From NCBI RefSeq assembly GCF_964188315.1, contig NC_135661.1, forward strand, positions 75,206,001-75,270,000: a stretch of DNA of 64,000 nucleotides, read 5' to 3'. Source of the stretch: Podarcis muralis. Taxonomy: Eukaryota. Positions 13,118-61,514 of this stretch are shown in pieces. The notes under the pieces were generated by a model that saw only the letters and a list, made by a program, of their open reading frames with translations, did no database searches and was not told the DNA's origin. The translations under genes and the position numbers were made by a program. Numbering within the stretch: the first letter of the stretch is position 1; every line of letters begins with the position of its first letter.

Positions 13118-16100
13118 ATGTGGCAGATCCTTCTCCTGCTTGGCAGTCTGGCCTGCTGCTTGCTTGGCTCCACAATGCTTATTGCTTCTGTGTGTACCAC
13201 TAACTGGATTATTCAGCCCACTCTATTCGGCTATTACTACGAAGGGCTCTGGAACTTCTGTATAGAAGAGCAATGTATGAGCCTGAATCGAGATTGGGGT
13301 GAGTCTTTCTCTGGTGGCCAGTATGCTAAACTCTCGACGGATGTGGGTGGGGTGTTGTTACCAGATCAGGGCTGGCTCACTGATGAGGCAAGGCAAGGTG
13401 CCCACCTTGGGTGCAGAAGCCAAGAGGTGGCAGCCACCTCACCCACCTGCCACGCTGCCACCTCCATCCCTGTACCAGATACTGTTCCTGTGCTTTTGAC
13501 AGCAGCTTAATCTATATGCATCCAGAGTCCATAATGCTTATCTCTAGCCTGTGAAAAAGACATTGCTTGTTAACTCAGATGTGGCAAGCCTCTGGCCCTC
13601 CAGATGTTGTGGACTCCAGCCAGCATGGCCAACGATCAGGGATGATGAGTTGTGGCCCATCAACATCTGGAGAGCCAAGGGTTCCCATCCCGTGGGGAAA
13701 CCCAGCCAGATCTGTGGGGTATAAATAATAAATTATTATTTTGAATTATGGTGCTGGAGGAGACTCTTGAGGGTCCCATGGACTACAAGAAGATCAAACC
13801 TATCCATTCTGAAGGAAATCAGCCCCGAGTGCTCACTGGAAGGACAGATCCTGAAGCTGAGGCTCCAATACTTTGACCACATCATGAGAAGAGAAGACTC
13901 CCTGGGAAAGACCCTGATGTTGGGAAAGATGGAGGGCACAAGGAGAAGGGGACGACAGAGGACGAGATGGTTGGACAGTGTTCTCGAAGCTACAAACATG
14001 AGTCTGACCAAACTGCGGGAGACAGTGGAAGACAGAAGTGCCTGGCGTGCTCTGGTCCATTGAGTCCTGAAGAGTTGGACACGACTAAACAAATAAACAA
14101 CAACAAAAGTTATAACAATACCAAATACATATCCATATACAGAGATTTCTCTACACAGGGGGTAATGGTAGAAGGCAAGCATATCTGATTTTCCAGTATT
14201 ACTAATTCACTGTTGCTTCTCTTTTGCAGCGTACAAAGTGTTTGTTTTAGGATTCCTGAACATGGGAACATTTTCTGGATTCTTGTGCAACCTTCTTTCT
14301 CCACTCTTGTGGGTGTGTGGAAAGAAGGAGCAGATACGAAGAGCTACCTTCAACTCAACTTTCCTGTCAGGTATTGCAGATACAGAACACCCCCCTCTCC
14401 AACTACTCCGTTTCTTTTAATATAGCCACGGGTCTTTAAGTATCAAGAATATGATACTTAAGAGCCACTAAGCTCAAACCAGATCCATAAAATTGTTCCT
14501 GTTTTGCCCTGCACTGGAGGGCAGGACCCAAACCAATGGCTTCAAGTTACAAGAAAGGAGATTCTAGCTGAACACCAAGAAGAACTTTCTGACAGTAAGA
14601 GTGAATGAATGAATTTACTTTATTACGGTCATAGACCAGCATAAGCAAAACATCTAAATAAATAGCATAACAGTATGAATCTAAGCAAATAATTATTAAA
14701 TAAATGGGAGCAAGAACCATACATAGATTTAAACATATACATAGAATACTTAATTAAGCATAGATAATGATTGAGTAAAAACTGATAAGAAAAATTAAAA
14801 GATCAGTCAACACAGCTATATGGGGTGGACTTCAGAAGTGCGGGTCTAACAATATGGGCCTTCAGATTAGGACTGAGTTGTAGCATAGACCATTCTTCGT
14901 CAGATATCTATCATGGCAATCTGGAAAGAGTGGCTCATGTTCTCCTGTCCTGTCCCCTTTATAAAGATCTGAGGAATGAGATCATCACCCCACTCTTACT
15001 TACCATCCCAGGCTGCCCATCTGTGGCCACATTGTTCTTTCTTTCATCAGATCAAAATGATCAGACAACAGCAAAGGTTGCTAGGTTTATCCAGGGTGCA
15101 CGATAATCATGGTCATTTGATCGCCATTTTACCGATTGTTGTCTTTTTAATTGTATATATTGCTTGTTTTATGTTGTTATGGCTGTTGGCTAATGCGAAT
15201 AAAGTTTATCTATCATGGCAGCACAAAATCTGGTGACTAAATATGTGTGTGATGGCCTGGGATTCGGACTCAGACACGGAATCTGAGGAATCCCAGCCTG
15301 CACAGGATTCCCCGCCTCCAGAACCAGCTGAGCCGGGGCTGGGGCCTGAGCCTGAAGGGTCCTCACCTGTGCTGGATCCTCAGGTGCAGGCACCAGCTGA
15401 GTCTGCTCTGGCCCCTGAGGTGATGGAGGGCCCATTGCCTGCAGGTGCCCCACTCTCAGCCCCGTCAGGGGAAGAGGAGGTTGCCTCTGGGTCTGGTAAC
15501 CCTCCAGCCTCTCCTGAGCTACAGAGGCTCAGGGTAAACAGGCAGAGGGAACTATGTTCCCGCTGGAGGAGTGCTCGCCTCCAGGCCAGGAGAGGCGAGT
15601 CACCTGAGGACCGGGGCCGCCCTATGCCTCGGGGCAGATAAAAGGCAGTCAGCCCCTGTCCCAGGTTGCGGGAGCAACGTGGTCACTAGTCTGTTCCTGC
15701 CTGCACCCTGTCCTGCTCTTCTGCCAGAGTTCCTGACCCCACCTGACTCCCTGCCTTGGACCCAGCTGCAGCTTTGATGGACAGCCTCCATACCACACCA
15801 TTGACTTCGGACTGGACTCGGACCTCGCCTCTTGGTAGCCCCCAGGACCAGCACAATGTGACTTCTAGGGTCTTGTCCTGTAGTAATAGGGAGATGTTGT
15901 GTTGTTCTGAACGCCCAGGGAATTTATATAAGATGGGTTGGATAAACCTAGTTCAAATGTCTATATAATACTGGCCATGAAGAAGGGCATGCTCCGTTGT
16001 TTCCTGCTGCCCAGAGCCACATGGACATTTCCTCTCCTCATAAGGTATCTTCCTATAGTGGCCTTCCTGAATTGCTGAAGGGAGAGCCTGACAATGGGCC

Positions 16101-17132
16101 AAAGTGAAAGCCCTTCATTGTTTTGGTATTTCAAGATTGGCTATGTTTTGCATTTGGGAAGTCAAGTATCTTCTAGTTTCACTAATTAAAATTTTTGGGG
16201 GGACAGTAACAGGTGTTCAACAGTGGAACAGACTCCCTTGGGAAGTTGTGGACTCTTATTCCCTGGAGGATTTTAAGCAGAGCTTGGTTGGCTTTAGTTG
16301 AGATTCCTGCATTGCAGGAGTTTGGACTAAATGGCTCTCGGGCTCCTTTCCAAATTGATCAAAAGACCCAAGTGAATAACATCAACAGCCATAAGAATAC
16401 CTTCTAAGCTAGAACCACAGATCAAAATGCACATCGACATGCCTGGGTAGGCTTCCTTAAGCAGAAAAGTTTTTAGGAGTCTGCTAAAGTCGGTGGAAGA
16501 AGATTGGAAGAAATTTAAAGACTATCTACAGAAATATTGTAAAATTAATGAATGTTAGAATGATGCTGGATAAAAAGTTAAGTGGTTTTTAGCTATAACG
16601 CTATAAGGAATATGAAAAAATGGATTATTAACAGGTAAAAATTTAGTGGTATAATATTTTAAGATTAAAGACTAGGATAAACAAAGAGGGAAAGGATTTG
16701 CTGAACTAATAAATTGAATTGGAATACAAAAAAGGGAGGTGTGAGGAGGTCTGGGAAACAAACAAATGAAAAATAAGTGATGGAAAGATGGAATTGTTTT
16801 TTAACTATTTTTATTTTGTATTTTTCTTTTTTCTTTTTTCATTCTGTAAAATCTTAATAAATATCTTTTTAAAAAATATTTCTACCCAGCTTTTCAGGTG
16901 AGATTGGCTCAACAGGGTGAGGTAGTGGGGGTGTGGTAGATAACAGTGCATCTGACTGCTGGCTCTGGAAAGAGTCACCATTGACATGCTTCCGTTTGCT
17001 CGTTCCTAGTGGTTACTACGTTGATTGGAATGAGTGTGTACACAGGGAAATACACTCGGAGTACACCTCTGGAATACCGTGGGTGGTCCTTCATCTTGGC
17101 CTGGTGTAGCTTCTCCCTCTACCTTGTTGCTG
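13118..17132 (+). CDS. Gene A: PMP22/EMP/MP20/claudin-superfamily tetraspan protein (LIM2/NKG7-like), exon 4 not located
   Basis: Exons 13118-13298 (181 nt, MWQILL...NWIIQPTLFGYYYEGLWNFCIEEQCMSLNRDW), 14230-14370 (141 nt) and 17010-17132 (123 nt, VVTTLIGMSVYTGKYTRSTPLEYRGWSFILAW). All GT-AG, phase 1, in frame. W-GLW-C-C signature present. Confidence 0.85.
13740..14105 (+). mobile_element. Bov-B LINE 3' fragment
   Basis: ORF 13767-14063 [37 protein letters not shown] tail. Confidence 0.92.
14880..15215 (+). mobile_element. LINE 3' end with zinc-knuckle-like C-terminus (RTE-X-like), back to back with a similar minus-strand tail at 14603-14880
   Basis: Translation ERVAHVLLSCPLYKDLRNEIITPLL followed by AATAAAG and a short-repeat tail. 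Lies between two halves of a CR1 3' end (about 14520-14600 and 16210-16290). Confidence 0.5.
15248..15855 (+). mobile_element. Solo LTR (Gypsy-type)
   Basis: TGT...ACA termini with a perfect 5-bp TSD ATGTG (15243-15247, 15856-15860). Confidence 0.8.
16470..16875 (+). mobile_element. L1-type LINE 3' end
   Basis: ORF end EEDWKKFKDYLQKYCKINEC*, AT-rich 3' UTR, AATAAA and A tail. Confidence 0.6.
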
Positions 17133-18438
17133 GTGAGTGCGACTAGCAGAAATATCCAGGAGACTGAGGTTTGCTTCCATTCTGATAACAAGAGTTCCTC
17201 TCCCCCCCCCCCCCCATCATTGCATCTGCTATTGTTTCCTGGGATGCTCAATCGCTATATCCTGGGGGAATCAACATGGAGGCCTCCATAGGTTGCGGAC
17301 TTCAACTCCCATCATCCCTGATGGTCTGGCATGATGCCTGGGTCTGATGGGAGTTGTGGTCCAAATCCTCTGGGTGGCACTACAACAACTACTTCAGCTA
17401 TAAACAAACTTGGTTCTCTTATTTGCTTGTTATGTGGAGTCATGGGAAAGGCAGCACAGGGAAAGATAGAAACAGATTATGGTGGTAAGCATATCACTTG
17501 ATGTCAATTGGGCTTACTTTGGAGTAAATATGCTGTGGATGAGGCTGCCAATTTCTTTTCTGTTAGAAGAACGGAAGAGAGATCAGCGGCGAAACACCCA
17601 CTGTGTATGCAAAATGTCCCAGATTCAATAGCCCCCGATAGCTGTTTATGTTGGGGGAGGGAAGAGAGAGAGTCTGCATTTCCAAAAAAGGAATAAAATA
17701 TGGCCCAGATTTGTATAAAAATTGCATGTGTGAACATATGGCAAGGGAGGTGGAAGGTATGGTAAAAAGGAGTGTAAGAAATCTAATAAATAATAATAAA
17801 TGCTTTCATTTTTAAAGTAATTTTAATTGGTTTTCATAAATGTGCAACAAAATGTAGCTAGATAACTAAGCATAACATAATCTTGCCAGTGACCAGTTTT
17901 CATGTCTTTATAATATTTGTTCCTCTTTTAGCTTTCCTTCGGGTTTCTCCCTTGTTGTTCGGTCAGGGTTGTGTGGATACCTCCATCTTCCAGAAGTCAG
18001 CTCCTCCAACTGAAGTATCAGCAATTACCAACGGTCATGACAACAAGATTTGTAGTAATGAGGCTGATGAAATATCTTCCATGTAGACCCTTTTGGTTCG
18101 TATATAAAATAAGTGGCCACCGGATGGAATAAAAGGATTCATTTTCCCGTTCTCCTTTCAGCACTATTACATTATCGGTAATTTTCTAAGCTATAGCCAG
18201 CTTCCATACATTTCTATACCACAGGTCTACTCCCAAATCCTGTAGATTTCAACACGTTTTGGTAATGGATAGCCTTGCTGCAACAAGCAAAATTTCAGGA
18301 GTTTTCTTCTTTTAATGGACTTATTGGACCTTCAGAAATTGACAATGAACACAACTATGGGGTAAATCAATTTCTTCCCATGAAATATGAGAAAATTCTG
18401 AGTATATTAACCCCCCCTCAAAAAAAATTGTATTTTGA

Positions 18439-21595: not shown

Positions 21596-24500
21596 ATGTG
21601 GCAAGTCCCTTTTCTCAGATTTGGCTGCCTGGGTCTGCTAACACTCAGCACGGCGATGCTACTTACTGCTATGTTTACTGGGCCCTGGGTTGTTTGGCCT
21701 TCCATTTTCGGACCTGCTTATGAAGACCTCTTAAAGCAGTGTTTCCTATCAACCTGCACATCCCTGGAGCGAGATTGGGGTAAGTGGCTGGTTGGTGACG
21801 ATCACTCCAAACATCTTGGATGAAATGCCCCCATCTAGGGCAGCATGCACTCCAACATTTCTCTGATGAAAATAGAGACCCCACCCACCAGACTGGGTTG
21901 CCCCAGCCACTCTGGGTGGCTTTCAACATACATAAAAACATAATAAAACATTAAATATTTTTTAAAAAATCTTCCCTATACAGGGCTGCCTTCAGAAGTC
22001 TTCTATAGGTTGTATAGTTACTTATCTTCTTGGCTTGGGGGGGGGGGTTGCATAACTCCATAACCTCCAACATTTATCCAATTAAAATAGGGACGTCCAA
22101 AGTAAAGCAGGACATTCCGGGATCAAATTAGAAACTAGGTTGGCTTCTGTAAATCGGATTACTATCTTTGGAAAATGGGGACACTTGGAGGGTATGGGTT
22201 TGCCAACTTTTCTTCTTCTTCTTGCCAGTCGCTGCTCCTCTGTTTTTTAACAGCAGCTAGATCTAGATCTTATCTTATATCCCTGTTCAGGGAAGTTTTT
22301 AATGTGTGACATTTTAATGTATTTTTAATCTTTGTTGGAAGCTGCCCAAAGTGGCTGGGGAAACCCAGCCAGATGGGCGGGGTACAAATAAATTATTATT
22401 GTTATTATTTACAGTGGTAGCTCCAGTTGTGCATGGAATCCGTTCTGGAGCTCTGGTCGGATCCTGAGGAATCCGCAACCAGAGGTGCTGCTTCTGGTTT
22501 TTTTTATATATATAATTTTTATTAACCGGCCAATCAAATCAAATTAAATCACATCACATAAATTCCGAATTACAAAGCCGAATTTTAAATTTTGTTGGGG
22601 GGACCCATATTTCAAGATCCGAAGGGGGATTCTGATCATCTTCTTGCTACTGCGTTAATGTCCAAATCAGTCCAAATCAGTCCAAACAGAGTTCATAATT
22701 CTATCCAGTCTTATCTTGCTGTTTCCACATCACATCTTGTTCATATATTTTCTTTTTTTTCTTTATGATCTCTTTTGATAGTCTCCTTAAGCCGATAAAC
22801 AGCAATAATAATCCTGTGTGAATTTTTCCGTTCTTCCAATCCTCAAATCGAGATGGTTTCCATATATCATCGCCTTCATAGATAACATCGCTCTTTCCAT
22901 CATTAATCTCGCAAAACTGTCGCTTTTAAGTCCCTCTGAGGAGTTTCACCCACAATATAAAAACAGCTCTATTTCTCTCTTTCTCCTCCCAGACTCAAGA
23001 CCTCCGACAGAACTTCCCAATATGTCGACGGCATTTTTAACTGCGTCATTCCAAAGCTCTTATACATTCCACGCTCTTCTTAAAACATGCTTTGGTTTGA
23101 AAGTGTATCTCCACACAGCTTTAAATCCACAGCTTAAGTCCTTAAAACGACATTTCTTGTTTAATCACATAACGGGATTCTTGTTTAATCATATAAGGAA
23201 AGAAAGGAAAGTTTTTTCCCCCTCCCCCATCAGTCATTTGCCATACCGAGTCTTGGCGTATCTTCTCATGATTTAATGTTGTCTTGTTTTATCAGAGATC
23301 TCTTCTGTTAGCAGTCTTTACTCCCCCTCCTTCCTTGAAATATGTGCATTCCTTCATCCAAATTGTTTCTTTTGAAGTTCTTGCAGCTAGTGGCGCGGAT
23401 CAGGGACGGCGTCCAGGAGCACCGAAATCCCACAGGAGGGCTTTGTGCCTAGTGCCCCCATCCCCACAAATTCGGGGGTGGTATAGGGCACAGCAGGCAA
23501 GGCAGTCCCCCCCCACCATCCTGGGGGGGTAGGGAGGCTAATTACTCCCATCATAGCCTCCAAATTACCTCGTGTGGGTTGGAGAGATGTTATTGTCAGC
23601 CATCTTCCGATGCGCCCCCTAGTGCCCCCCCAGAGGTGCTGCTTCTGTGCATGGTGCATAGAGTGCTTCTGTGCATGTGGAGAAACTCAGAAAAATACTT
23701 CTGGGTTTGCCACATTCGCATCCTGAAGGATACACAACCGGAGATGTTTGTGTCCAGAGGTACCACTATATATCTCATCTCCATGTCAAACAGAGCGCCC
23801 TTTGCTAATAATTCCTGCATATAAAGCTCGTCTCAAATGCACACGAGCAATTTCTAGCCTTCTCCTCCTGTTTCTTCTTCCTGGGTTTGAGCTAACGCAG
23901 AATCTCCCTTTCTCATGTGAGATAAATGTAATCCTGTGGCTAATTTCAGGACATGCTCAGTCCTCGGTAAAAGGGGAGGGAGAGGTAATGCCTGGAAGCA
24001 ATTGACTCTGGAGATGAAAGGTAGTCACACCCACACCAGACATTTAAAGCACTTGTAACAAACTACAGTTCCCAGGATTCTTTGGGGTAGGGGGAAGCCA
24101 CAACGGTTAAAGTGCTTTAAATGTACATGATGCTGTAGCATACTAGACTCATAAATTAACCTTGCAAAAGGGAAGGACAAAAACAAACTCCCCCTCCTAA
24201 GAAATTCCAGAGCATTGGTGCCACATGATGACAATGATTACTGTTGTTTCTCTTTTGCAGTGTACAATGTCACTGTCATAGGATTCCTTGTGCTTGGGGC
24301 AACCGATGGAGCCATTCTGGTTGTTGTTTTCATGTGGTTCTCCATCTGCAAGAAAAGCAAGAGGGTGAACAAGTTAATGAACAAACATGGTGCTGTGCCA
24401 GGTATTTCAGTCACTGAATGTCCCCTTCTGCCCAGTTCGGGGTTGACTTTCCTGACCCGTCATGCTCAGGAAGTTTCTAGGTGGGCCTGAACTGTACCTC

Positions 24501-27329
24501 CACTGTTGGAGATGACCTGCTTCTAAACACCAGTTGCTGGCAACCATGGAAGTGCCTGTTTGATCTCACATCCTATTTGTGGGTTTTGTCATCTAGTTGG
24601 CCATGATGAGAACAGGATGCTGAATTGGATTTGTCATCGGCCTGATCCAGCAGGCTTGTCTTACATACTTAATGTTAGCATTGCAAGTTGTATACTTCTG
24701 CCATGTTGGGGGTGGAGGATGGCTCCAACAAATTTTCCTAATCTGATAATGCTTGCAAAAATCCCAAAACAAAACCCTAATGCATAATCTCCTAGTCTGT
24801 GATACCTGGTTATTATTGCTCTTCTTTTTCTTCTTTTTCAAAGCACTAATTACACTCTGAAGATTGGCACAAACAGTAATGTCCAGATTGATAGTGGAGC
24901 AACTTGGGTGTATTATGTGAGAATCGTTGTGGGTTGTATTCAGCAAACCTTTACTCAAGAGTAGACCCATTGAAATTAACTCCGAGTTGTAAACCACTTT
25001 TTTAAAACAACAACTACAACACCAAAGCAGTGTATAAATTCAAATAAATAAATAAATAAAAGACTAACCTAGGTCCATTAATTTCAGCTTTTAGTTGTAT
25101 TTCTAATTACATTTAATAAATTTTCAAAAATTTCACATATACATTCCAATGCAAAATATTTTTTTCTTTTGCTTGGTTGACTTCCCACCCTATTTCCCAT
25201 GGTGTTTTTTTTATTACTCCCCCTTGCTGCACCCTGTCTTCCCTCTCTTATAACAATCATACAATATTCTCTAAATCCTTCTGATGCTCATAGTTTAAAT
25301 CCTGCTTGCGAATTCATCGTACTGTAATATTTCTTTAAATAGGTCCAGTAATTTCTATGGTTCTGCTCTGAGTAAATGTTAGTTGAATACCAACCATCCT
25401 GTGCCATTAAAAAAATTGGGGGGAAAATGATTATAGGCTCCTGTGGGTCCAAAGTACTCATCCACCATATAAGATTATTTGCGGCGCTTCTGCATAGTTG
25501 GTTGCTTTGGCCTTGACTCCCTTCAAGCAGCTCCCATTGTGGGGATGGGGATGGGGAAGAGCAGGGTAAGAAGACGGCAAGGTGGGGGGCAGCAGCCCCA
25601 CCATTGTGCACACACCCCAATGTGGCTGCTGTTGGCAACCCAGAACAACTCTCAGAACAACGCCATCCCCCTCCTGCCCAAAGTGTACAGTGCCACTTCT
25701 AGGAGGATCTCAATGCTTCAATCTCATGAGTTGCCTTTTCTGAGCTTCAGCTTGGACTCCATCACTTCCAGTGGGAGATGTCTTTTTGTGTCTTGGTGTG
25801 AGTCACTGGACTTCCTGCTTTCAACTGGAAGGTTCACCCAGGACCATGACTTGTGCAAAACCAGGGCAGGTTGAGGTTCCTCTTGGGACAGGTCATTTGG
25901 GCACTTGCCTGCTTTAAAAGCAAACCTCTGAAGTGTGCCACCTCTGACCATGTGTACCTGTGCGGCCGTTCCCCAAGTTTCTAGTAACAAGCCTTTCTGG
26001 TTTATCCACAAATGACAGTTGGAATGTCCAACTTCCCCTATATCTGCATCACTGGTTGACTGGACAGGACAACAGGGCAGCAGTCTGTAGTGAGTCAGGA
26101 GGAACCAAAAAAGCAATGAGGACCAGAGGACAAGGCAGGATTCAGGAGGCGTCAGATTAGAAACCAAGCCCCAAGTGCAAGACCAGATCTCAGGTAGAAC
26201 TTGGTCACTCATGCAGAGTCCCTTAGCCTCCTTATACTCTTTCCTTCCCAGGAGGAATCGGTAGCCATCTTGGAAGGTGTCAGCCCAGCAGCTGCTGTAC
26301 TGAGAAACTGCAGTGATGCAGCTCGCCACATGGGGCAATGGTCAGCATTTCCCAACAGGGACGGAGTGGGGCAGGGCAACTGTGTAAACTAAGGGGTATT
26401 ATGAATACTCCTCTATTTACTCCTTCCTAGTGGTCGCTACGTTGATAGGAATGTCTGTATATACTGGGAAATACACTCCACAAGTTCCTGTGAATAACCG
26501 TGGGTGGTCCTTCTTCATGGCTTGGTCTTGCTTTCTGCTTTTCTTCATTGCCGGTAAGTTAAAAAAAGATAGAGCTATTGGGGGATGGGACATGGACTTG
26601 CATCTCTTGCAAGGGGTATGGAGGCCATGGCTTCCTTCTGGAGGCGGTAGCATCTCTTGAGAGGATCTTCTTGTTGGTTGCAAGGAAAAGATAGGCATTC
26701 CCTGGACGCCGTTACCTCTTGGGCTTTTGCAGATTTGGGGGTTCCGCCTAGTCAAGTGACACCTCTCTCTTGCATGCAGGGGTTGTTCAGGGTGGTTAGA
26801 GAATTGTGACAAAAACGGAAACAGAACCAGACCTTGTGAGCTTCTCTTACTCACCCTATGTCTGGAACGGAAATCCGTCCCTGGAATACATTTTGCATTT
26901 GCTGCTATTGCAGATTTCAGTCCCCCAATGATGGCATTGTCAAATATGTATATTATGTAAGTTACCGTATTTCGCCACACACTGGGCACACTGAATAAAA
27001 TAGTTTCTGGTGGGAATGAACTGCAACAGAGAAGAAAGTGTACTGCATGCGATGAATACTGGGTGGAAGGAAAATGGCGCCTTCTTACATCCCTAGGGCT
27101 ATTTCGGTGGCATAAGGATAAATGCTTACTGCCTGAACTTTGGAGCTGGAGGAAATTATTTCCTCTCCCCCCTGACATTCTGACGAACATTTCTCTCTCT
27201 CCCACAGCTATAGGAATCCTGTTTTATCAAGTGTACCAAGAAATAGAAGAAGAGCTTGAGGACAATGTTGTACCGCAAGGGATGCCAAACGGCAGCTATT
27301 CCTTGGAAACGGAAGGGGCTAAAGGCTGA
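21596..27329 (+). CDS. Gene B: claudin-superfamily tetraspan protein, 189 aa (paralog of A)
   Basis: Exons 21596-21779 (184), 24261-24401 (141), 26431-26553 (123) and 27208-27329 (122, ends TGA). Total 570 nt in frame, all GT-AG phase 1. Exon 2 and 3 sizes equal those of gene A. Confidence 0.88.
22412..23768. mobile_element. Tc1/mariner MITE interrupted by a retroposon
   Basis: CAGTGGTAGCTC ... GAGGTACCACTA termini with TA flanks. Confidence 0.6.
22497..23629 (-). mobile_element. ~1.1-kb non-autonomous L1/Tx1-like retroposon, copy 3 (full length, diverged)
   Basis: G-rich 5' end with AAGATGGC, T-run at 22498, 18-bp TSD CCAGAGGTGCTGCTTCTG (22479-22496, 23630-23647). Homologous to 1-1155. Confidence 0.7.
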
Positions 27330-34549: not shown

Positions 34550-34586
<37 letters not shown>

Positions 34587-39726: not shown

Positions 39727-39727
<1 letters not shown>

Positions 39728-39761: not shown

Positions 39762-39763
<2 letters not shown>

Positions 39764-39800
39764 GGTATATTTATATTTATAAATAACTAGGCAGATAGAT

Positions 39801-45300: not shown

Positions 45301-48067
45301 TTCCTTGACATCTGGTTGGAGGGAATTCCACAGGGTGGGCGCCACTACCAAGAAGGCGCTCTGCCTGGTTCCCTGTAACCTTGCAGTGAGGGAACCACCA
45401 GAGGGCCTCAGAGCTGGACTTCGGTGTCCGGGCTAAATTATACGGGGTGGAGACGCTCCTTCAGGTGTACTGGGCTGCAGCAGCGGAGCTTCAAGCTCCA
45501 GCAGGCGGCAGGGCGGAGAGCAGGCGGGGGCGTGGCTGGCACATGTCCTAGGGGCATGGCACGCCACCTGTGGAGGAGCAGGGCACCCTGTGTGGGAGGG
45601 CAGCCGTGATAGCACCCCACCGGGATCGTGCGCTCCCCCCCTGTTCCTCTGCCAGTGCTGGGCTGAGGCCATTTAGGGCTTTAAAGGTCAGCACCAACAC
45701 TTTGAATTGTGCTCAGAAACGTACTGGGAGCCAATGTAGATCTTTCAGGACCGGTGTTATGTTGTCTCGGTGGCCACTCCCAGTCACCAGTCTAGCTGGT
45801 GATGCAGCTGTTTTTAGGGAAGAGCAGTGAAACATCTCTTCCTCCTCTGGGGAGTGGCAGGAATAGTTTGGTACACTATGGCTTCCACAACCACCTTGGT
45901 GTATTCAGAGGTCTGCAACTGCTGTCCTTGCTCCTTTGGTGTCCAACGTGACGGCATGGAACCAATTTCGCAGCTCCAGTGACACAGCATGGCTCCTGGC
46001 AGTCCTGCTTCCATGTGCCATTTTCCTCCAGGGCTTCATCACCTGCAACAAGCAATCTTCCTCCTCCCTGGGGCAGCTTGCCTGTGCCACTGTTCCAGGA
46101 CAGTTGACTCTGCTCTGTTGAGAAATTCCACATCTTGGCCAGTAGCTTGAAATGTGGATAGGTGGACCTCAGGGTGCTGTACCTTTTCTTCCAACGAGGA
46201 AGCCAGCTTGCAGTTGCTGCGGGTGTAGCTTTGTGCCTTTGTTGGGTTTGTTGGATTAAGTTGCTCGCTTGGAGCTGTCTGCGATCCAGAAATCCACACA
46301 CCCCGCCCCACATTGGTCCTGTTATCAAACCAGAACACAGCATAATCTCACTGAGGGCTTTTGCCAGGCTGCCACAGGTTAGATTCCCTCCACTGGAACT
46401 TCCACCCAGCCACCATTTTATTGTGTAGATCTGGAAGCTCAGTGCCAGAGGTGTGATGGCAGCATCACTCCATGGACAGAGGCCAGCAGAGCTGTGTTGG
46501 GCTGGCAGAGGTGGGGAGACCTATGTCCCATCCAAGCTCCACCTCACCCCAGTTGCAGCAAAGGGTTGAATTGCAGCCTTACTTTTTTGAAAAAGCAGAA
46601 TTCTAAAACTTTGAGGGTAATGTATAATATAAAGCACATCTAAACAGAACAGTTTTGATAATCTTTCTAAAGGCTGGTGGAGAAAAGGTGAAATTAGCCC
46701 CCCAAGAGGCTGTGTTTGAGCCAAGGGGCCATCAGTAGGAAGGTCCTGTCTGTCAGATTCACGTTTTTCCAATCTTTCAGTTCACCCCATTTCCATATCA
46801 GCTTTTGTTGCTATTTTTTAATCATGAAAATTCATGAGCAAACATATTTGCAAAAAAAAATTCCCCCAAACATAATACATTTGGGTATCTTCTGCCCCTC
46901 CCGTTAATATAAGCACTTTCATGCACACTCTGCCTCAAAATTATACTTAGGAACCATGCATTAGAGTCTAAGAATTCCCCCTCTTTCAGGTCTCTAATAA
47001 TATCACAAGCAGGCCAGAGGTGGGGAACCTGTGGCCCTCCAGATTTTGTTGGACTTCAGCCCCCACCAGCTCCAGCCAGCATGGCCCACAGTCAAGGATT
47101 ATGGGAGCTGGAGTCAAACAACAGATTTCTCCATCACTTATCAAAATTCTAAGTATCTCCTCTGTGTTTTGTAGCAATCTGTTCGCTAACTGCTGTGGTG
47201 GTATTTGGGGTCCAAGTTGATCGGAAATCAGACTCCGCACATCCTTCTGGGAAAATTGCTTTTTACTTAAGCTGTTTCACCTCTGCTTTTTCCTTCTTGG
47301 CAGGTAAGTATCAGTGGGGGGCTGGACATCTTTTGCAACAAACCGGCTTCTCCCGAAGATCAGACTTTTGGTGATAAGAAAACTGATGGGAGAAATGCAG
47401 CATAAACGTCATCTCAGCTCCCCACAAACAAATCAGCATAAATGCTAACTCAGTAGCCAACATCACCTGATCTCCCTGAAAACAAATCTGGATGAATGTC
47501 CTACCTCCAGTTGCTGGGAATATCAAGTGTGGAGTGTGCTCTTGTGCTTGATGGTTTCTCCTAGGCCTTTGGTTGGCCACTCTCAGACCAGGATGGTGGG
47601 CTACATGGGCCTCTAGACTGACCCAGCACACCTTTTTCTTACTTCCTTATGCTCAATACACAGTTCATTTGGAAGTGCCCTGAGTGTCCCTCACAATTTC
47701 TAACGGAAAGACATTATTATGCACAGCGCAAAAGAGGAGAATGTGAGACCTCCTCCACGTTATAAAATATTTCGGTTGCTATGTTTGCATGTGGTAATGG
47801 GAGCTGCCACGTTAACTGGAATACGGCAACTTAAGGAGAAATAAGTTCTGATGTAATTCGACCACCACATAGGAGGTTGGGTTTTGTAGTAATGCTGGCT
47901 TTTTGTTCTTTTTGTAATATAAGAAAGCAAAAGAAAAAATTTCCAATTTCTTTTTGCTGCTTTCTCTTCCAGCTGTTTACAATGGTTTGGTCCACAAGTT
48001 TTCACTCTGGGAGGTTGCAAGCTCAGGCCGTGTTGAAGATACACAAAAGCCGGATGAGACAGCCTAG
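42343..48067 (+). CDS. Gene D: claudin-superfamily tetraspan protein, 190 aa
   Basis: Exons 42343-42538 (196, ...SPTWTSYIADVDHFVIGLWLLCSDKYGC), 44367-44519 (153, VSLNITRIFMILALIMSF...SIFSFIA), 47175-47303 (129) and 47973-48067 (95, AVYNGLVHKFSLW...TAG). Total 573 nt in frame, phase 1. Start ATG inferred. Confidence 0.88.
44048..44260 (+). mobile_element. Bov-B 3' fragment
   Basis: Bov-B terminal sequence. 13-bp TSD ACAAACTGATGTG. Confidence 0.92.
44914..45800 (-). mobile_element. L2 LINE 3' part, interrupted by a solo LTR and a hAT-like insert (45478-45657, TSD CTGGGCTG)
   Basis: Matches the reverse complement of the L2 copy at 58948-59530. Confidence 0.75.
44999..45245 (-). mobile_element. 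Short solo LTR (247 bp)
   Basis: TGTTA...TAACA termini, 5-bp TSD CTTCC. TATATAAG and AATAAA on the minus strand. Confidence 0.8.
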
Positions 48068-50163: not shown

Positions 50164-50639
50164 ATGCTTCTCTACAGGGGAATTAGCTGCATCCTCTCCT
50201 GCATCAGTTTTGTGCTTCTCTTGGTTGCTCAAGCATCCTCTGGGTGGGCAGTGCACGAAACAGATATCCTGGAAGCCTCATACACTGGTTTATGGACCAC
50301 CTGCACAGAAGATGGCTGCAGTTTCTTGGCCATCAGAGAATGTACAGTATGCCTGGGTTGGGCTGGGTGAGGTTGGGTTCAACAGACATTGCCGCTGCTG
50401 TTTCCCTCAGGCTTTGAATTCCTCTTTCCACATGCACACATACTATGGGTGCTGCTACTAGTGACTTGTGACAGAAAAAAAAGATGGCTTCCCTCATAAA
50501 TACAGCTAAAAATCTTTTTGTTATTTGTTTTAAAGAACAAACAAACAAACAAAAATGGAAAAGGAAAACCCAGAAGGCTCTTAGGCTGACTCTATGGGTT
50601 TTATAGTTGCTTGGGGTTTTTTGTAAAGATTTTTTAGGA

Positions 50640-50691
<52 letters not shown>

Positions 50692-52026
50692 CCGCTTTAT
50701 ATTTTTCAGAAAAATCTCAAAGTGGTTTACAGCATATTAAACATCAGTAAAAAAAATGCAGAATCAAACATTTCTGAAGGAAATTCTGCCATTCAACAGA
50801 ATGGGCTGGCCAGTCTATTCATGTTCGAAGCACATGAGCTGAATTAAGATCATTCCCTATACACCCCGGACTGGATCCTGCCCATGTTTATTCTGACTAA
50901 CTGATATGATCGACATTTGCAATTATTATACAATCACGAAGGTGCATTTATTGCAGAAAGTGCTTTAATATGTCATTGCAAATCGCTGTTGCCATTATTA
51001 TTCCACTATTCATTTATCTCTGCAACCATAGCAGCTGAATGAGTGCAGCTCTGTGAGGGGGATAAGGGGTCTCCAAATAACTTCCAACACCCTTCCAGCT
51101 ACAGCTCCCAGAAATCTAAGGGGGCGGAGAGAGAAGCCATGACTGTTTAAAGTGTTTTTGATGTACTTTAAAAGTATGGCGTGAATGTGGCCCTATATTT
51201 TAATTGTCGCAACCTACCATTGTGGCACGCTCTTGAGTCCCTCCTGCAAAAACACTGATGATCTGGAGGCATCCATACATTTCATGTCCTTTTATTCCCA
51301 GTCACAGAATTTGGGTTGCAGAAAGGAGAGACTTTCTCCATGTTTCCTGGGTGCTGTTGTTTGGGTGGGGAAGAGCTGCCTGGGACCACCCTCAGCTATT
51401 TTTACAAGTCTCTTATTCCACTTTAGTGAAACTGGACGTCGTCCGGAGCTTTATGCTCGTGGCTCTCTTTTTTTCCTTTCTGGCCATACTGTGCTCTGTG
51501 GAATCGAAGTACTGGATGAACTGCACTGAGGACTTTTTCATGGATGGCCCTATGGCGGCTGTCTTCAGCTTGACCTCAGGTACCAATTTCGAGAGGAATC
51601 ATTTGTGTCCAACTGGGATGTAGCTGAAGACAGGAGTGCCTGGCGTGCTCTGGTCCATGGGGTCACGAAGAGTCGGACACGACTCAACAACTAAACAACA
51701 ACAACAACGGGATGTAGCTGCTTTTGGGGACAAAAGCAAGGAAACTGGCGGGGAGCAGGGGGAGCACAAGTACTCGAGAACTGCCTTCTGAAAACAGGAC
51801 ATTTATTTGTCTGTTTATAGCATTTATGCCTGTCTTTCAGCCAAAAGAATTCTCAAGGGTGGCTTACAAACACCAGTTCTAAGATGGCCGGTTCCCTCAG
51901 ACTCTTGATCTAAAAAGACACAACGCATGAGGAAATGGGGAATGGGAGGGAGAAGGCAAAAGCAAACTGCTAAATTCCATAACTGCTAGCTCCTAGGGGC
52001 TGAGGCTTTTTTGGGGCCCTCACCAA

Positions 52027-52072
<46 letters not shown>

Positions 52073-54617
52073 CCTGCCTCTCAGTCGAACCTACCACATG
52101 GGGTTGTTGTGAAGAGTATTTGAGGAGAGGGAGAACCATGTATTCCACCTTGAGATCCTTGGAGGAAAAAGGTGGGATAAAGATGCAATAAATGAATACA
52201 TAAATGCTAACCTGCCGTCCTGGGCTCCGTTAGAAGGAAGGGAGGGGTATAAATTGGATAGCTAAAAAAGAACCACAGCACACCAGGGAGAATAGTGTGT
52301 GAATACCATCCATTCACCACGAGCACTGTTGCATTTGCAGGACTAACCAAATATAATATTTGAATGGACCCTAATCCACTGTTTCTTGTAGGGATCTGTG
52401 TGCTGGTCGCTGTGGTGGTATTTGATAACTCCGTCCGCGAGACAACAGAGCCTCAACTGCAGGACCCTTCTGCTAAATGGGCTTATTTCCTAAGCTGTGT
52501 TGTCTGCGCCCTTTGCTTGGGGACAGGTAAATGCAAAGGCTATAATGGTTATAATGGCTATTATAGTCCTTGGCTATAATGGCCTATAGCCAATTACACT
52601 TTAGAGTAGACCCATTGAAATTAATGGTCTTACATTAGCCATGTTAATTTATTCCAGTGGGTCTGCTCTAAGAAGAACTGGCCACAATTCATATAGAGAT
52701 AGAGGTTCCAACTTTCTCCATAAGATCTCAGGTTGGGTTACAACCATTAAAACACAGTATTGAAAACAGTTTTAAAAACAACAAAAATTTACAATCGGAG
52801 AAAGCAGGTGGGTCGTAAAAATAAGGTCCATATAGTTAAAGCTATGGTTTTCCCAGTAGTGATGTATGGAAGTGAGAGCTGGACCATAAAGAAGGCTGAA
52901 CACAGTGGAAGACAGGAGTGCCTGGCATCCTCTGGTCCATGGGGTCACGAAGAGTCGGACACGACTAAACGACTAAACAACAACAAGTGTCAAAAGCCAG
53001 GGTAAAGGGGTGTGTTCGGTGTTCAGTGAAACCTGTATAATGAAGGTGGCCAGACACACCTCCATGGGGAGGGAATGCCACAGGCTAGAGGCTGTCACAG
53101 AGAAGGCCCTTTCCAAGACCACGCACACACCCGTGCACATCTGAGGAACTGCCAAGAGGGTTAACTCTGCCAATCTTAGCATCTGAGAAGATCTGGAGGG
53201 ATGGAGGTGGTCTTTCAGGTATCTGAAAGGAGACATTCAAAGTAACCAGTTCTCATGTTTTGACTCAGAGTTTCAGCATCTTGGAAGGGGCTTGTCATGC
53301 TGAAAAGTCAGAAACAAGGGAGGCTCCCCCTCTCTCATTGACTACGGAATTTGCTCTGACAAGACATAGGGATGGCCAGAAACCTAGATGGCTTTGATGG
53401 AGGAAAGGTCTATCAGTGGCGGTTGGTCACAATAGCTATGTTGTGTCACCACTGTATGCCTCTGAATGCTGGTTGCTGGGAATCACAAATGCGGGGGAAG
53501 AACTTTTGAGCTCAGGTCCTGCTTACAGGATTCCCAAAGGCATCTGGTCGGCCACTGTGAGAACAGGATGCTGGACTAGATGGTAAAAGCAACTTACGCA
53601 AATGCCTTATATTAGGGGAAATGGCCCAGTTAAACCTGCATAGAACAATGTGTTACCTTGCAAGAAAACTGTACTAAAACGCAAAGTGGGGTTTCAGGAG
53701 GAGAAATTCTCTTCGTTTTCGAAAATTTCAAACTGCTGCAAAATGTGGATAACTAAATTTATGATTGGAAAACAAGAAACCGAGAGAACGGAAGTTGATA
53801 GGCCTTCTACACCTCAAGCCCTGAGGCTTTTTCTGGTGCCTGCAGGGTCCCACCCCCTGCCCCTCCCCCTGCTGAAAGAAACGTGGAGATGCTTACGGAT
53901 AAGCAAATATTTTTTCAGTGGCAGAACTGCATTTCAAAATTTGGATAAGTATGAATTTTGGAGGGTGGTGGTGTTTGGGTTAGCATACTGCTATAGAAAG
54001 TGTGAATTTGATAGATTTTTTACTTTAAATACAGTGGTACCTTGGTTCTCAAATGACTTGGTACTCAAACAACTTGAAACCCAAACACTGCAAACCCGGA
54101 AGTAAGTGTTCCGTTTTGCAAACTTTTTTCAGAAGCAGAACGTGCTCCATTTTGAGTGTTACGCTTCCGATTTGAGTGCCACACTTTTGTTTTGAGTGCC
54201 ACACTTCCGTTTTGGGTGTTAACACTGAAGTCTGCCTGTTTTTGCTATTTATTTTGCTTTTTTGTTTTTGCGGCTTTTTGTTTTTTAAGAGTCTGGAACG
54301 GATTGATCCATTTTGCATTACTTTCTATGAGAAAGTGTGCCTTGGTTTTGGAACGCTTTGGTTTTGGAACGGACTTCCGGAACAGATTACGTTTGAGAAC
54401 CAAGATACCACTGTATGTACTGAACCATATTTCTCCTCCCCCCTTCCTGAGAGTCCATGTGTGTCCACAGGTACCATGCTGACAAACCATGCCATTGCCC
54501 ACTCATTTCTGTACCTCTCTCTTTCTCTCTCTCCCAGGGATATTCAGCATGGTGTTGTACCAGCTCTCCCTCTGGAAACCAACAGCTTATTCCTCACAGG
54601 TGGCTCCCAAAGGGTAA
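50164..54617 (+). CDS. Gene E: claudin-superfamily tetraspan protein, 181 aa
   Basis: Kozak CCACCATG. Exons 50164-50341 (178, ...GWAVHETDILEASYTGLWTTCTEDGC), 51427-51579 (153, KLDVVRSFMLVALFF), 52392-52526 (135) and 54538-54617 (80, GIFSMVLYQLSLW...TAA). Total 546 nt in frame. Exon 1 donor is weak (T|GTACAG). Confidence 0.85.
51627..51708 (+). mobile_element. Very short Bov-B tail
   Basis: Bov-B terminus flanked by a 12-bp TSD GGGATGTAGCTG. Confidence 0.85.
54032..54413. mobile_element. Tc1/mariner MITE
   Basis: TA-CAGTGGTACCTTGG ... CCAAGATACCACTG-TA. Confidence 0.85.
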
Positions 54618-55897: not shown

Positions 55898-58800
55898 TCA
55901 TGAATTTCCAGTAATAATATGAGAAGCGAAAGTTGCTATAAGACATTTAATAATTAAGTGTTCATCCATAGCACCACATCTGACTGAGACATGGCCAGGC
56001 CTCACAATGTATACATATATTGTAATAAAAACTACAGCAGCAACAATTAGAAGCAAGTGGGGAAATGGGGCAGTCTTGGAAAGCAAGAGGGATATTCAAT
56101 CCGAGGCAGAAACAATTGCTGAATAAAAGGTATCTTAGTAATGGATGAGATCATTTTAAGGGTTCCAGCAGGGCACTTGGGTAAGATGGCTTCTCAAAAG
56201 TGATGTCGCAGAGATGAAAGTGGGCATCTTTTCTGCAATCCAGGCTTATTCCAAACGGCTCTTGGTTAAGTGACATCACCAAACAGAACGCCCATTGGCC
56301 AGTCAGGTTTCAAGGCCCCACCTGACTGGGGAAAACCTGTGACAGGTGTCATAGCCGTGGGCTACACTCAAGGGTCACTGGGTGTTGATGGCTCTTCCTC
56401 TTGGGATGGTTTTACTTTTTTGTGGAACTTCCTGTCCCATAGCAGGTTTTGTGTACCTGGAAAAGAAATTGGGAAATGAGAAGACTAATCCTGGAAGTGT
56501 GAGAAAATGAAGCTTTTATATGAAATTGAAGCTCATTTTCTCATATATATATTCATTCATATATATGAGAGAAAACAAAGCTGACCCCACTTTACCAAGA
56601 TTGTTATCTGACTCAGAATAGGATGTACTCACCCAACACTAAGCTGAGAGAGAAGGAGACACAAGCTATGCAGAAAGCCCAGTCTGGTGCCAGGTGTATA
56701 ACATCTGCATCTATGGCAACACGGACCTCAAACAACACAATCATTAGAGAACTGACAGTGCAGAGTCCTGCAAGCAAGCAAGAAACTCTTATTAGACAGG
56801 GATGTCCCAAGACATTTTGCTGCCTGAGACAAAGGAATCTTCCACTCTTCCTCCAACCCCCCCACATGGCATGTACTAAGCCCTATGAGACTGGTGACTC
56901 GGTTTGGATGGACCTTTCAATTATAGTTTGGTTTAACCCATTGCAATTCGTTTATCTGAAGTGGAAATTTGTATGTGTTTTTGTGCATATTTTCAAAAAT
57001 AGGTGCACTTTCTTACACAGTTTTGCCTAGTATAAGCATTTTTGCAAGCAATTTACCCCTCACCAACCCCACAAGTTGAATGTGTTTCTTTAGGCTGTTT
57101 TCAGTAATATGCACATTTTTGTAATCGTTCCTTGGTTGGAAGCCAACCACTATTCAAAATTGCAAAATTCAGAGAAGGGCAAAATTCAAAAGAGAGGTAT
57201 GTTTTGGTTTGTATACTGATTTGAGAACATTGTATTAGAATGCGAACTAAATGAATCCCCTCCAACACACAATCCTTACTGGAAAATGAATCTAAGGTTC
57301 CACCAGCACTATACATTTAAAGCTGTGTCGCAGTGGCCACCAGGCCCATAGGTGTCACAGTGCCCAGGAAGGTTTTCACTACTGCTCCCAGACAAATGCC
57401 CCAGACTCTGAGCTTTCATTAAAAAAAATGAGTACATCTCTAGCTCTCCTAGAAAGAAAGTTACAAAGCAAAATGTGCAGGCAGCCTTCTAAGCAATCAG
57501 TGTTTTTAGCCAATGAATGAAGTCAGAGCTGTGATTGACAAGTAGGTTGTTTGGACACCAGGCAACAGGAATCCCTGGAGTCCTAAAGAGCTTCTGTTTC
57601 CTCCCCTTCTCATTAGTGTTCCTACTTTTGTCTTATTTTCAAGTAGTCCTTAGGATCTCTGCATTTTGCCCTTTCTTTGTCCCTTGCAACTTGCTAAAGG
57701 TTATTATCTTCAAATACCACTCAACAATAATTGTGTGTGGATGTTAAAGAGTGCTGCCCCCCCCCCCAAATTCCAAAAAATTAAATATGAAAACTTGGGA
57801 AAGAGACTTGGGCATGTTTCCTGCTATGAAGGAGCTGATGTCCAGTCACTCATTAATAATGTCCAGTCACACATGCCTATTTCTGAAGTAAGTCTCTTTG
57901 TGTTTAATGGGGCTTTCTTCCAGATAAGTAGATACAGTATTGGCATTAAGGAAAACAGAGTTCTTGTCCCATTTAGAGCTGTATCTTCACAACTTTCTAT
58001 AGTTAGTATGGGGTTAACCAGGGGCAGGAACAATGAAACAGCAGTGGCTGTACTCTAACGTTATGCCATGCTGCCCACAGCAGCCATTTTGTCTTACACC
58101 ATGTCCCCTCCATGGCAGCCATTTTGTGACTGGAACCCTCGGCACTCTCAATATTGCCCTCTGGTCCAAAAAAGTTTGGCAACCCGCTGCTGCATCATGC
58201 CATTTTCAACAGTCATGGCTTCCCCCAAAGGACCCTGGGAACTGTAGTGCAGAGAGTTGCTAGGAAACTCCCTATTCCTTTCACAGAGCTACAATGCCCA
58301 GAGCATGCAAACAGTCAAGCCCTCTTCCCAGAGAACTCAGAGTTCCTCCGAGCATACTCCACTCTTGCCCATGGCTGGCACTGTTTCTGCTCCATGTGGA
58401 GAAGCACTAAACTAAACTCACTGTTATGCTAGATAATGAAGTGCCCTGACACGATACCTGCGCAGTAGTTAGCAATGGATGAAATCATACAGTCGGGAAT
58501 CTCCTTCTTTGTGATGCGGCTTAAAAGGTTCTGTCCGCACAGTAAGGCAAAGCAGGTAAAAATGAGGGCTATTATCATAAGGCCTCGGACAGCCTCCAGA
58601 CTCTCTAGAAAAAAAGAAAGAAAAACAGTCCCATTGCAAGTGCATTCGTGGCATTATGCCAGTGCTTCTAAGAACAGATTTGCAGTGCATTCCTAGTCAG
58701 TGTATATATGAATGGGAGGTCCACATGCAACCAGGGTGGCAACTGCATGTTTAGTTAATGTAGTGCCAGGGAACAGGTGGTGCAGGTGGTGCTCCTGTGT

Positions 58801-61514
58801 CAATTTAACTGTTATTCTTAGGTACATGCTTTGATAGATGTATAGCCAGCATAATGTATTGGCCTGGCCAGCCACAGAGAAAAGGAGCATGAAAAAGAAG
58901 GGAGTGAAAGAGTTCACTTCAAAGATGAACTTTGTCTCAACTCTGTGTGAGACCCTCCCTGCCCGCAGACTGTCTTGCCAGAGTGGTGCATGCTCTGGTT
59001 ATCTCCCACTTGGACTACTGCAATGCGCTCTACATGGGGCTACCTTTGAAGGTGACCTGGAAACTGCAACTAATCCAGAACGCGGCAGCTAGACTGGTGA
59101 CTGGGAGTGGCTGCCGAGAACATATAACACCAGTCCTGAAAGACCTACATTGGATCCCAGTACGTTTCTGAGCACAATTCAAAGTGTTGGTGCTGACCTT
59201 TAAAGCCCTAAACGGCCTCGGCCCAGTATACCTGAAAGAGCGTCTCCACCCCCATCATTGAGGCCCACGGCCGAGGGCCTTCTGGCGGTTCCCTCACTGT
59301 GAGATGTGAGGTTACAGGGAACCAGGCAGAGGGCCTTCTTGGTGGTGGCGCCCGCCCAGTGGAACACCCTCCCTTCGGATGTCAAGGAAATAAACAACTA
59401 TCTGACTTTTAGAAGACATCTGAAGGCAGCCCAGATTAGGGAAGTTTTTAATATTTAAAGTTTTATTCTGTTGGGAGCTGCCAGTGGAAACTCAGCCAGA
59501 TGGGTGGGGTATAAATAATAAATTATTATTGTGATCATGAACACCTGTATCAGAAATGATGTAATCTTGGCACAGAGCCCCTACAGCCTATGTACAGGCC
59601 CTTTGCCAAGATTACAGCTCCAGCAATTCAATGAGACTTTAGCCACGGGGTTTCCGGGGGCTCTGCCCTGGCACATCAGACTGGCCTGTGCCAGGGGTGC
59701 CATTGTAACTGGGGTCTCTCACAGCAGGAATGATGGGTGGCTGAGCTAGCTTCACAGCTTACCTTTAAGTATTCTTTTATGTCCTTTAGTTATCTTTGCT
59801 TTGTATACTAGCACCTGTTGCTGTTTCTACACTTAGTATTATAGTAGTTAATAAAGTTTGCTTCTGCTCCTTAAGTGTTTGTTGCCCTCCGTTTACTGAT
59901 AATCCAAGGGACCTGATACTGCTTAGTGGTAGCTACTGACCGGGGTAATTATTGAGCAGGCAGGACAGTTAAATACAAGGTGTTCATGTGAGCTGTGTTG
60001 GCAACTGCATATCCAAGTCCTCCAAACCACTGAGATTGCAGTACAGAGTGGATGATTCCAGGCAGCCCAGAAGCAGGGCATGAGGGCGATAGCGTCTTCC
60101 CATTGTTGGCCCTCTCTTAAAGAGGAAAATGGCCAGTAAAGGTTCAATATCAGCAGTGAGCAGAAAGCAGATAAAATCTATCAGAGCAGAACTCAGAGAT
60201 TTTGAACAAACCAACAAGGATTTCTGGCTCTGCATTGTTTAATAATGGGGGAAAGGGACATTTGTGTATGCATTGTACATTCATTCTTATAACAAATTAG
60301 AACTCTGTTTGCTTTGGTAGGAAGGCTGGGGGGCAAACCAAGGAGACTGCTGAAATCTAAGAGGTGGGGGGGGGGGGTTGGCTTGGAATCCAAACCAGCC
60401 ACAGCTTCATCTCTGACGTCTAATAGTAACAGTGAACTACAGTGCAAGGCTGCTGTATAATTTATGTATTTAATCATATGAAGAAGAAGTTTACGTTAAA
60501 TAATATAAAACATAAGAAAACAACCCCTAAAATCAACAGAGTTTAAAAAGCAAGAAGACATAACAACATCACCAAAATTTAGATGAAACCAACAGTTTTA
60601 CAAACAAATGTGCAAAACAAACAAAAATTGCATGTTCCTTTAGGCTTGTCTAAACAAAAAAGTTTTTAGCAAGTGTTGAAAACAACGGGCCGGTTCTTCA
60701 CTAACTTTTACTCATAGTAGACCCATTAAAAGTAATGGACCTAAGTTAGCTATGGTCATTAATTTCAGTGACCCTACTCTGGGTTGGCTACAACCAAGGT
60801 GTTGGCCTAATATTAAGTTCCAGAGCATAGATGCTGCCACACTATAACTCCATCTACCCTGTACATTTAAAGCAATATCATACCATTTTAAACAGCTATG
60901 TCTTCCTCCAAAGAATCATGGGGACTGCAGTTTGTTAAGGGAGCTGAGAGTTATTGGAAGACCTCTATCTCCCTCTGCCCCAGAGCTACAATTCTCAAAG
61001 GGGTTTAACAGTCAACTTCTATCCCAGGAAACTCTGGAAATTGTGGAGACTCTTAGCAACTCTCAGCATACTTAACGCACTATAGTTGCCAAAATTATGT
61101 GTGGGAAGCCATGATTGTTTAAAGTGGTCTTATATTGCTTTGAATGTATAGCTGAGGTCTGAAAAAAATGCTACTTCTGCAGACAAAAGCTACTGAGTGG
61201 GTACCTAAGGGGTAAGACCGTCATTCAAGTCAACTCGTCCTAGCCTCCACTGCATGGAAATAAAACTCCTACCCAGAAGTCCGTTTGGCCCATGACCCTT
61301 AACCCAAGAAAGAACAGTAAACCAGTTGTGCCTCCTAACCGATGCTGTACGGGTGTGGTTTACAGTCCTTCTCAAAGCAAAAAAGCCACAACCCCAAATG
61401 AACATTGGATTTCACACAGTGATGGACCAGCCAGTTGGGAGATGCTATGCAGATGATGAGCAAGACGATATTGACGCAGCACATGACGCTGTATGTTTTT
61501 CTGACAAAAGGCAT
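55898..61514 (-). CDS. Gene F: claudin-superfamily tetraspan protein, ~196 aa, convergent with gene E
   Basis: Minus-strand exons 61514-61340 (175, MPFVRK...SPNWLVHHCVKSNVHLGLWLFCFEKDC), 58604-58458 (147, ESLEAVRGLMIIALIF), 56767-56633 (135, GLCTVSSL...DWAFCIAC) and 56031-55898 (134, less certain). All GT-AG, phase 1, in frame. Confidence 0.83.
58948..59530 (+). mobile_element. L2 LINE 3' fragment
   Basis: ORF HALVISHLDYCNALYMGLP...LQLIQNAAARLVTG...HITPVLKDLHW, then a (TAT)n-type tail. Confidence 0.92.

Follow-up and report, generated by a model that had tools for sequence, protein, structure and literature searches.

The PMP22/EMP/MP20/NKG7 group has few members in mammals, each of them medically or physiologically relevant (myelin, lens junctions, cytotoxic granules). 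LIM2, which encodes MP20, is single-copy and slowly evolving, and the classical claudins of the same superfamily have a longer first extracellular loop (ECL1), a wider cysteine spacing, mostly a single-exon coding sequence (CDS) and a C-terminal PDZ-binding YV. MP20 tetramers bind opposing tetramers head-to-head via their extracellular loops, forming junctions, and their Cys46/Cys51 pair is conserved and possibly disulfide-bonded (PMC11947226). In cattle, NKG7, CLDND2 and LIM2 lie side by side and adjoin ETFB and VSIG10L (PMC12071107). Here we analysed a 64,000-nucleotide stretch of Podarcis muralis DNA (OZ076960.1:75206001-75270000, assembly GCA_964188315.1; as a whole called the window), in which positions 13118-61514 hold six complete genes of four coding exons each, A to E on the plus strand and F on the minus strand (Table 1). 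We propose that these are six functional paralogs encoding four-helix proteins of about 180-200 amino acids of the PMP22/EMP/MP20(LIM2)/claudin type, and that they make up the left-hand and central portions of a squamate cluster of at least 9-10 members; our rough probability for this reading is 0.8.

The gene models were assembled exon by exon, using ATG/GT, AG/GT and AG/stop rules together with paralog similarity. All junctions in A-F are GT-AG, the three introns of each gene are without exception in phase 1, and each gene has a complete open reading frame (ORF). Coding exons 1 to 4 measure 175-196, 141-153, 123-135 and 80-155 nt, respectively; the six spliced genes are thus found where the initial annotation had placed them and within the exon-size ranges it gave. 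A scan for the GLW..C motif returned five stop-free segments (at 13244, 31213, 42481 and 50287 on the plus strand and at 61394 on the minus strand), and gene B, in which the motif reads E-D-L-L-K-Q-C, was located via its similarity to A. Since a six-frame scan of positions 1-64000 with a hidden Markov model (HMM) of the family recovered the same 24 exons only, the window contains neither a seventh copy nor stray pseudo-exons.

Four of the proteins are letter-for-letter identical to NCBI products of P. muralis, namely B (P0003, LOC144328483), C (P0006, LOC144328482), D (P0002, LOC114603496, 190 aa) and E (P0010, LOC144328605). Gene A coincides in range and length with an NCBI-annotated 199-aa gene, and its product is 96% identical to the P. 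raffonei ortholog (P0001), which is named 'lens fiber membrane intrinsic protein-like'. For F, the P. muralis annotation (P0040, LOC144328606) gives just a 142-aa product that starts from an alternative first coding exon and lacks the first transmembrane helix (TM1) and ECL1. The full-length F shares 177 of 181 residues (98%) with the annotated 181-aa forms of P. raffonei (P0039) and P. lilfordi (P0037). Its last exon was taken from the acceptor at 56456 because this yields the tail motif 'LG|T.(N/S)LL', common to most members of the F-like clade; for the same reason we rejected an acceptor at 56490, which would give 190 aa with a loose likeness to the C/D/E tails. Among the database products P0004, P0026, P0028, P0005 and P0012 we also found fused neighbouring paralogs: C-D fusions of 278-306 aa in Podarcis, a Phrynocephalus protein of 488 aa and a Lerista protein of 665 aa in which family sequence occurs in four stretches. 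Such products are gene models that read through, or were wrongly joined, across tandem arrays.

All six proteins pass the gathering cut-off (26.7 bits) of PF00822, the PMP22/EMP/MP20/Claudin superfamily, with scores of 36.8 (A ortholog P0001), 33.0 (B), 36.0 (C), 34.3 (D), 58.7 (E) and 41.1 bits (F ortholog). The matches span profile positions ~3-160 of 161, and single exons match at the correct profile positions. E additionally exceeds the cut-offs of Claudin_2 (39.5 bits) and TM225 (33.3 bits vs 27). When a profile of the family was compared with the PDB, human MP20/LIM2 came out on top (9cbv, E 1.9e-20, profile positions 9-164), followed by the calcium-channel gamma-1 subunit (E 4.6e-10), with the claudins also far behind MP20. 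Both the superfamily assignment and the relatedness to LIM2 suggested by the initial annotation are therefore well founded, LIM2 being the closest named relative by profile and, for both subfamilies, by structure; the affinity to NKG7 that was suggested along with it did not emerge in any specific form. The identity to LIM2 is only 16-20%, so none of the six is a LIM2 ortholog, and the proteins are superfamily members nearest the MP20/PMP22 branch.

The ECL1 signature W...GLW..C...C was found by motif scan in A, C, D, E and F; B keeps the W and both cysteines, with D-L-L in place of G-L-W, which agrees with the alteration noted earlier for this gene. In 19 C-H-type sequences (types G and H are introduced below) four residues are invariant, G47, W49, C52 and C58 in the numbering of D, and all lie in ECL1. 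A (48/53), B (49/54), E (47/52) and F (46/51) have their cysteines spaced C-x4-C like MP20, and C and D have C-x5-C. An RxFM-type start of the second transmembrane helix, expected for C-F, is present in C, D and E (R-x-F-M), but F reads R-G-L-M. The motifs claimed for the start of the fourth helix are all in place (GWSF in A and B, KWAF in C, KIAF in D, KWAY in E and DWAF in F). At their C-termini the six proteins, from A to F, read SSM, AKG, SLL, ETA, PKG and SDP, none of which is YV.

The AlphaFold2 model of D (predicted local distance difference test, pLDDT, 79.6) has helices at residues 8-30, 66-89, 105-134 and 144-177 and four strands at 35-60, and that of the A ortholog (pLDDT 82) has equivalent helices and a four-strand ECL1 sheet. 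The hydropathy peaks of C, E and F agree with this four-helix layout. These models predict the claudin/MP20 fold, in which a bundle of four helices is combined with an ECL1 sheet of four strands. For both models the best structural matches in Swiss-Prot are LIM2 proteins (template modelling score, TM-score, 0.67-0.80, at 16-20% identity), and the D model fits the solved MP20 with TM-scores of 0.69/0.78 and a root-mean-square deviation of 3.2 Å. CLDND2 stands lower among the matches (18-21% identity), and NKG7 is missing from the top 30 of either model.

The division into two subfamilies, A/B and C/D/E, with F nearer the latter, is borne out by the pairwise identities: 36% for A-B, 38% for C-D, 37% for C-E and 30% for D-E, compared with 25-27% for F to C/D/E and 13-19% for A/B to C-F. 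Resolved by region, paralog identity amounts to 30-33% in ECL1 and 30-37% in the helices, and to 12-22% in the intracellular loop, the second extracellular loop (ECL2) and the tail. The divergence is thus even over helices and ECL1, and specially diversified extracellular loops, as postulated in the initial annotation, are unsupported; ECL1, in which all four invariant residues lie, matches the helices in conservation, and it is the intracellular loop, ECL2 and the tail that diverge most.

The array is larger than six genes. About 9 kb beyond F, gene G (193 aa) follows in the same orientation, and after it another copy; a 202-aa gene (I) and a 207-aa gene (H) were added from the P. lilfordi accession order and from cluster look-ups. 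In Lacerta and Crotalus, the next gene past H is on the opposite strand (J), and its first exon resembles T2, one of the turtle genes described below. What had been taken for a six-gene array therefore continues outside the window with at least G, I, H and the T2-like J following F.

When 1.84 billion representatives were searched exhaustively with D (phmmer), 23 clusters were returned at E <= 0.001, all squamate except for one turtle cluster (lacertids, agamids, iguanians, skinks, cordylids, geckos, snakes and one turtle), with no LIM2 ortholog among them. Word-indexed searches with A and its ortholog returned Podarcis proteins only, so outside Podarcis the A/B type is documented by a single gecko locus. 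The gene order at this locus, an A/T3-like gene, a C-type and an E-type gene, then an F-type gene in opposite orientation, follows the same plan as in Podarcis. In the gecko Paroedura picta, C-type and E-type genes are present at two loci of CM110980.1, at 8.78 Mb (L007) and 21.43 Mb (L008), which are 97-98.6% identical over 15 kb though 12.6 Mb apart and inverted; this likeness reflects either a recent segmental duplication or an assembly duplication. The turtle Pelodiscus sinensis (L005, CM112034.1, 3.12 Mb) has three tandem genes, T1 and T2 on the plus strand and T3 on the minus strand, of which T1 and T3 were modelled from the locus by HMM-guided exon finding. The exon sizes of T1 (175/147/135) are those of lizard F.

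In our tree of squamate and turtle sequences, the squamate C-H types form one clade (support 96/94) with all three turtle genes outside. Gecko sequences fall within the E-type clade (98/97), and snakes, Sceloporus, Anolis and Hemicordylus are represented in an F-like clade (99/99). Trees constrained to place T1 or T2 in the F-like or C/D/E subclades are worse by 8-10 log-likelihood units, and their rejection by the approximately unbiased test is borderline (p-AU 0.03-0.055). A/B sit on a long branch and group weakly with T3 (73/32). Since geckos fall inside the E clade and share the gene order, the duplications are old and have left orthologs across squamates. Geckos split from other squamates about 200 million years ago. 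The C-H radiation most likely took place on the squamate stem, after the turtle split and before gecko divergence. Of the squamate-specific expansion proposed earlier, the part concerning the C-F type holds, within the borderline rejection of the forced placements, whereas a recent or a six-gene expansion does not: the expansion is lineage-specific but ancient and squamate-wide, each window gene having orthologs across squamates.

Going further, C-H may be a squamate-born MP20-like subfamily without one-to-one counterpart in turtles, birds and mammals, with six or more genes in existence before the gecko split and retained over the roughly 200 million years since, a proposal to which we give slightly less than an even chance. 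If it is true, lineage-specific membrane-contact functions await study, for example in the shedding epidermis, in reproductive tissue or in cytotoxic cells.

A somewhat less probable, still tentative alternative is that the cluster is the squamate counterpart of the CLDND2-NKG7-LIM2 neighbourhood. A/B, together with T3 and a 209-aa gecko gene, would then be fast-evolving NKG7 co-orthologs in cytotoxic-granule membranes, and C-H expanded co-orthologs of CLDND2. The cattle neighbourhood cited above, in which the three genes lie next to ETFB and VSIG10L (PMC12071107), and the turtle locus with three tandem family genes, T3 being on the opposite strand, would fit this picture, as would the A/B/T3-like exons of the gecko gene upstream of the C-type gene. 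It is also consistent with the 'NKG7-like' names of some P. lilfordi members and the presence of CLDND2 among the structural matches (18-21% identity). The best tree does group A/B with T3, but this grouping (73/32) is unsupported and prone to long-branch effects, and the tree was built without NKG7 or CLDND2 references. Further points against this alternative are the position of NKG7 outside the top 30 Swiss-Prot structural matches of both models and the lack of ETFB, VSIG10L and a true LIM2, none of which turned up either in the window or at the loci fetched from other genomes. The ORFs of the window flanks and introns include no cellular gene, just retroelement and transposase traces, so that synteny is unreadable from the window.

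Returning to the proposal that the six genes are functional, a comparison with P. raffonei sheds light on their history. This species has an extra, third A/B-type copy 5.7 kb upstream of A, in which TCG stands in place of A's ATG; it lies in a 5.6-kb segment missing in P. muralis. The start-less copy is probably a decaying paralog that was deleted in P. muralis, and the cluster has evolved by birth and death since its founding duplications. Between the two species, 12 of the 600 CDS sites differ in A (2.0%) and 8 of 570 in B (1.4%), compared with 4.3-8% in the aligned blocks around A and B (Poisson P for CDS vs flank 0.002 for A and 0.0001 for B, with 8 differences observed vs 24.5 expected in B). 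For the ratio of nonsynonymous to synonymous substitution rates (dN/dS) we obtained 0.59 in A and 0.17 in B, from 8-12 substitutions per gene. Small as these counts are, both genes seem to be under constraint, and for B this is clear even though its motif is altered.

This raises the question of whether some of the six might be decaying or non-functional birth-and-death copies that are open by chance, with B and F as the candidates. The signature G and W are lost from B, the sole annotated P. muralis product of F lacks TM1 and ECL1, the dN/dS of A is rather high at 0.59, and the start-less P. raffonei copy, absent from P. muralis, shows that such decay occurs in the cluster. But none of the six ORFs is disrupted and their splice sites are good; B shows the strongest constraint among the genes measured and is intact in P. 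raffonei too; and full-length F shares 98% identity with the intact products of two further Podarcis species. We therefore regard decay of any of the six as improbable.

The C-H types most likely arose by duplication before the crown-squamate radiation. The proteins would sit in the membrane with both termini cytoplasmic, as in MP20. A disulfide-braced ECL1/ECL2 face may bind partners, which would be other membrane proteins or, for adhesion or membrane organisation, further copies of the same protein in cis or trans; the paralogs probably differ in partner or tissue. With the fold, the topology and the cysteine pair in common with MP20, a contact-face role of ECL1/ECL2 is the best-supported suggestion as to function. 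Candidate sites of action are cytotoxic granules, by analogy with NKG7, and testis, by analogy with TMEM225 and the CLDND2 type, besides lens-like junctions and epidermis. That the proteins are instead auxiliary channel or receptor subunits resembling the TARP/CACNG gamma subunits is unlikely: gamma-1 is the second-best PDB sequence match (E 4.6e-10) and many TARP structures match the D model at TM-scores of 0.55-0.69, but such matches reflect the fold common to the whole superfamily, the MP20/PMP22 group is the one that has the C-x4-C spacing of ECL1, the protein size and the exon layout seen here, and the best TM-scores go to MP20.

Several points weigh against our interpretation of the six genes. 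The dN/dS values derive from just 8-12 substitutions per gene, and 0.59 for A means weak constraint; in B, the G and W of the GLW motif are gone. Splice-junction support comes from Gnomon models only, and the P. muralis annotation has F solely in its 142-aa form without TM1. The adhesion mechanism would follow from fold and motif only, and with an identity of <=21% to any characterised protein, the transfer of function from MP20 is weak.

We found no paper describing these genes in the literature (LOC identifiers, lizard NKG7, LIM2-like name). They constitute a subfamily of a well-known superfamily that is already automatically annotated, as 'uncharacterized', 'LIM2-like', 'NKG7-like' or 'membrane 1', and previously undescribed in papers. 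The names 'LIM2-like' and 'NKG7-like' are placeholders here, not orthology statements. That lizards and snakes have kept an old cluster of at least nine such genes means that the scaffold is able to diversify in the manner of immune or reproductive gene families, and for structure-function work the cluster supplies naturally occurring variants of the adhesive face of MP20. Its practical weight is modest until tissue and partner are established.

Traces of mobile elements are found in two introns (Table 1). A 191-aa ORF in intron 3 of C matches PF09004 (ALKBH8_N) with 43.6 bits; this domain is common in retroelement ORF2 tails, and we take the ORF to be such a tail, which probably accounts for the 4.4-kb length of the intron. 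In intron 2 of D, an ORF with a weak match to the Tc5 transposase helix-turn-helix (16.9 bits, under the cut-off) is probably a DNA-transposon remnant. Five repeat copies with a spacing of ~109 bp lie upstream of A in the GC-richest stretch of the window (GC 0.56 for 4001-6000).

Table 1. Genes, exons and other elements of the locus; positions refer to the window unless the P. raffonei locus (L006) is named.
Feature	Range	Strand	Exons or segments	Exon sizes 1-4 (nt)	Product or remark
Gene A	13118..18086	+	13118-13298, 14230-14370, 17010-17132, 17932-18086	181/141/123/155	199 aa
Gene B	21596..27329	+	21596-21779, 24261-24401, 26431-26553, 27208-27329	184/141/123/122	189 aa
Gene C	31093..39288	+	31093-31270, 32936-33088, 34594-34722, 39155-39288	178/153/129/134	197 aa
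Gene D	42343..48067	+	42343-42538, 44367-44519, 47175-47303, 47973-48067	196/153/129/95	190 aa
Gene E	50164..54617	+	50164-50341, 51427-51579, 52392-52526, 54538-54617	178/153/135/80	181 aa
Gene F	56368..61514	-	61514-61340, 58604-58458, 56767-56633, 56456-56368	175/147/135/89	181 aa
Alternative first coding exon of F	63092..63149	-	63149-63092	58	phase 1, GT donor; 142-aa product without TM1 and ECL1
Extra A/B-type copy, P. raffonei			L006 4238-4420, 5803-5946, 6845-6976		start-less
Segment with extra copy, missing in P. muralis			window 11108-11393 vs L006 2582-8192		5.6 kb
ORF in intron 3 of C	38241-38813	+			PF09004 match
ORF in intron 2 of D	45876-46340	-			weak Tc5 transposase match
Repeat copies	~4980-5462				five copies

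Of the known systems with which the lizard proteins can be compared, one is the TMEM225-like family (PF25452): E passes the TM225 cut-off and C, D and H match below threshold, yet PF00822 scores higher in every case, and the match of E probably reflects the relatedness of the two Pfam families rather than membership. With classical claudins such as claudin-15 and -19 they share the fold (TM-scores 0.58-0.69) and the W-GLW-C-C logic of ECL1, whereas all six lizard genes have three phase-1 introns and none ends in YV. CLDND2 and NKG7 are likewise small spliced tetraspans of the same superfamily in tandem with each other, but mammals have one copy of each, and NKG7 is not a top structural match. 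LIM2/MP20 differs in that identity to the human, bovine, mouse and rat proteins is only 16-20%, the C-terminal tails are unrelated, C and D carry C-x5-C, and the lizard genes form a fast-diverging multi-copy array. On the other hand, both share the Pfam family, the helix order, the folded ECL1 sheet, a similar length, a multi-exon CDS and the motif G-L-W-x-x-C-x4-C, with the cysteines of F at positions 46 and 51 exactly as in MP20.

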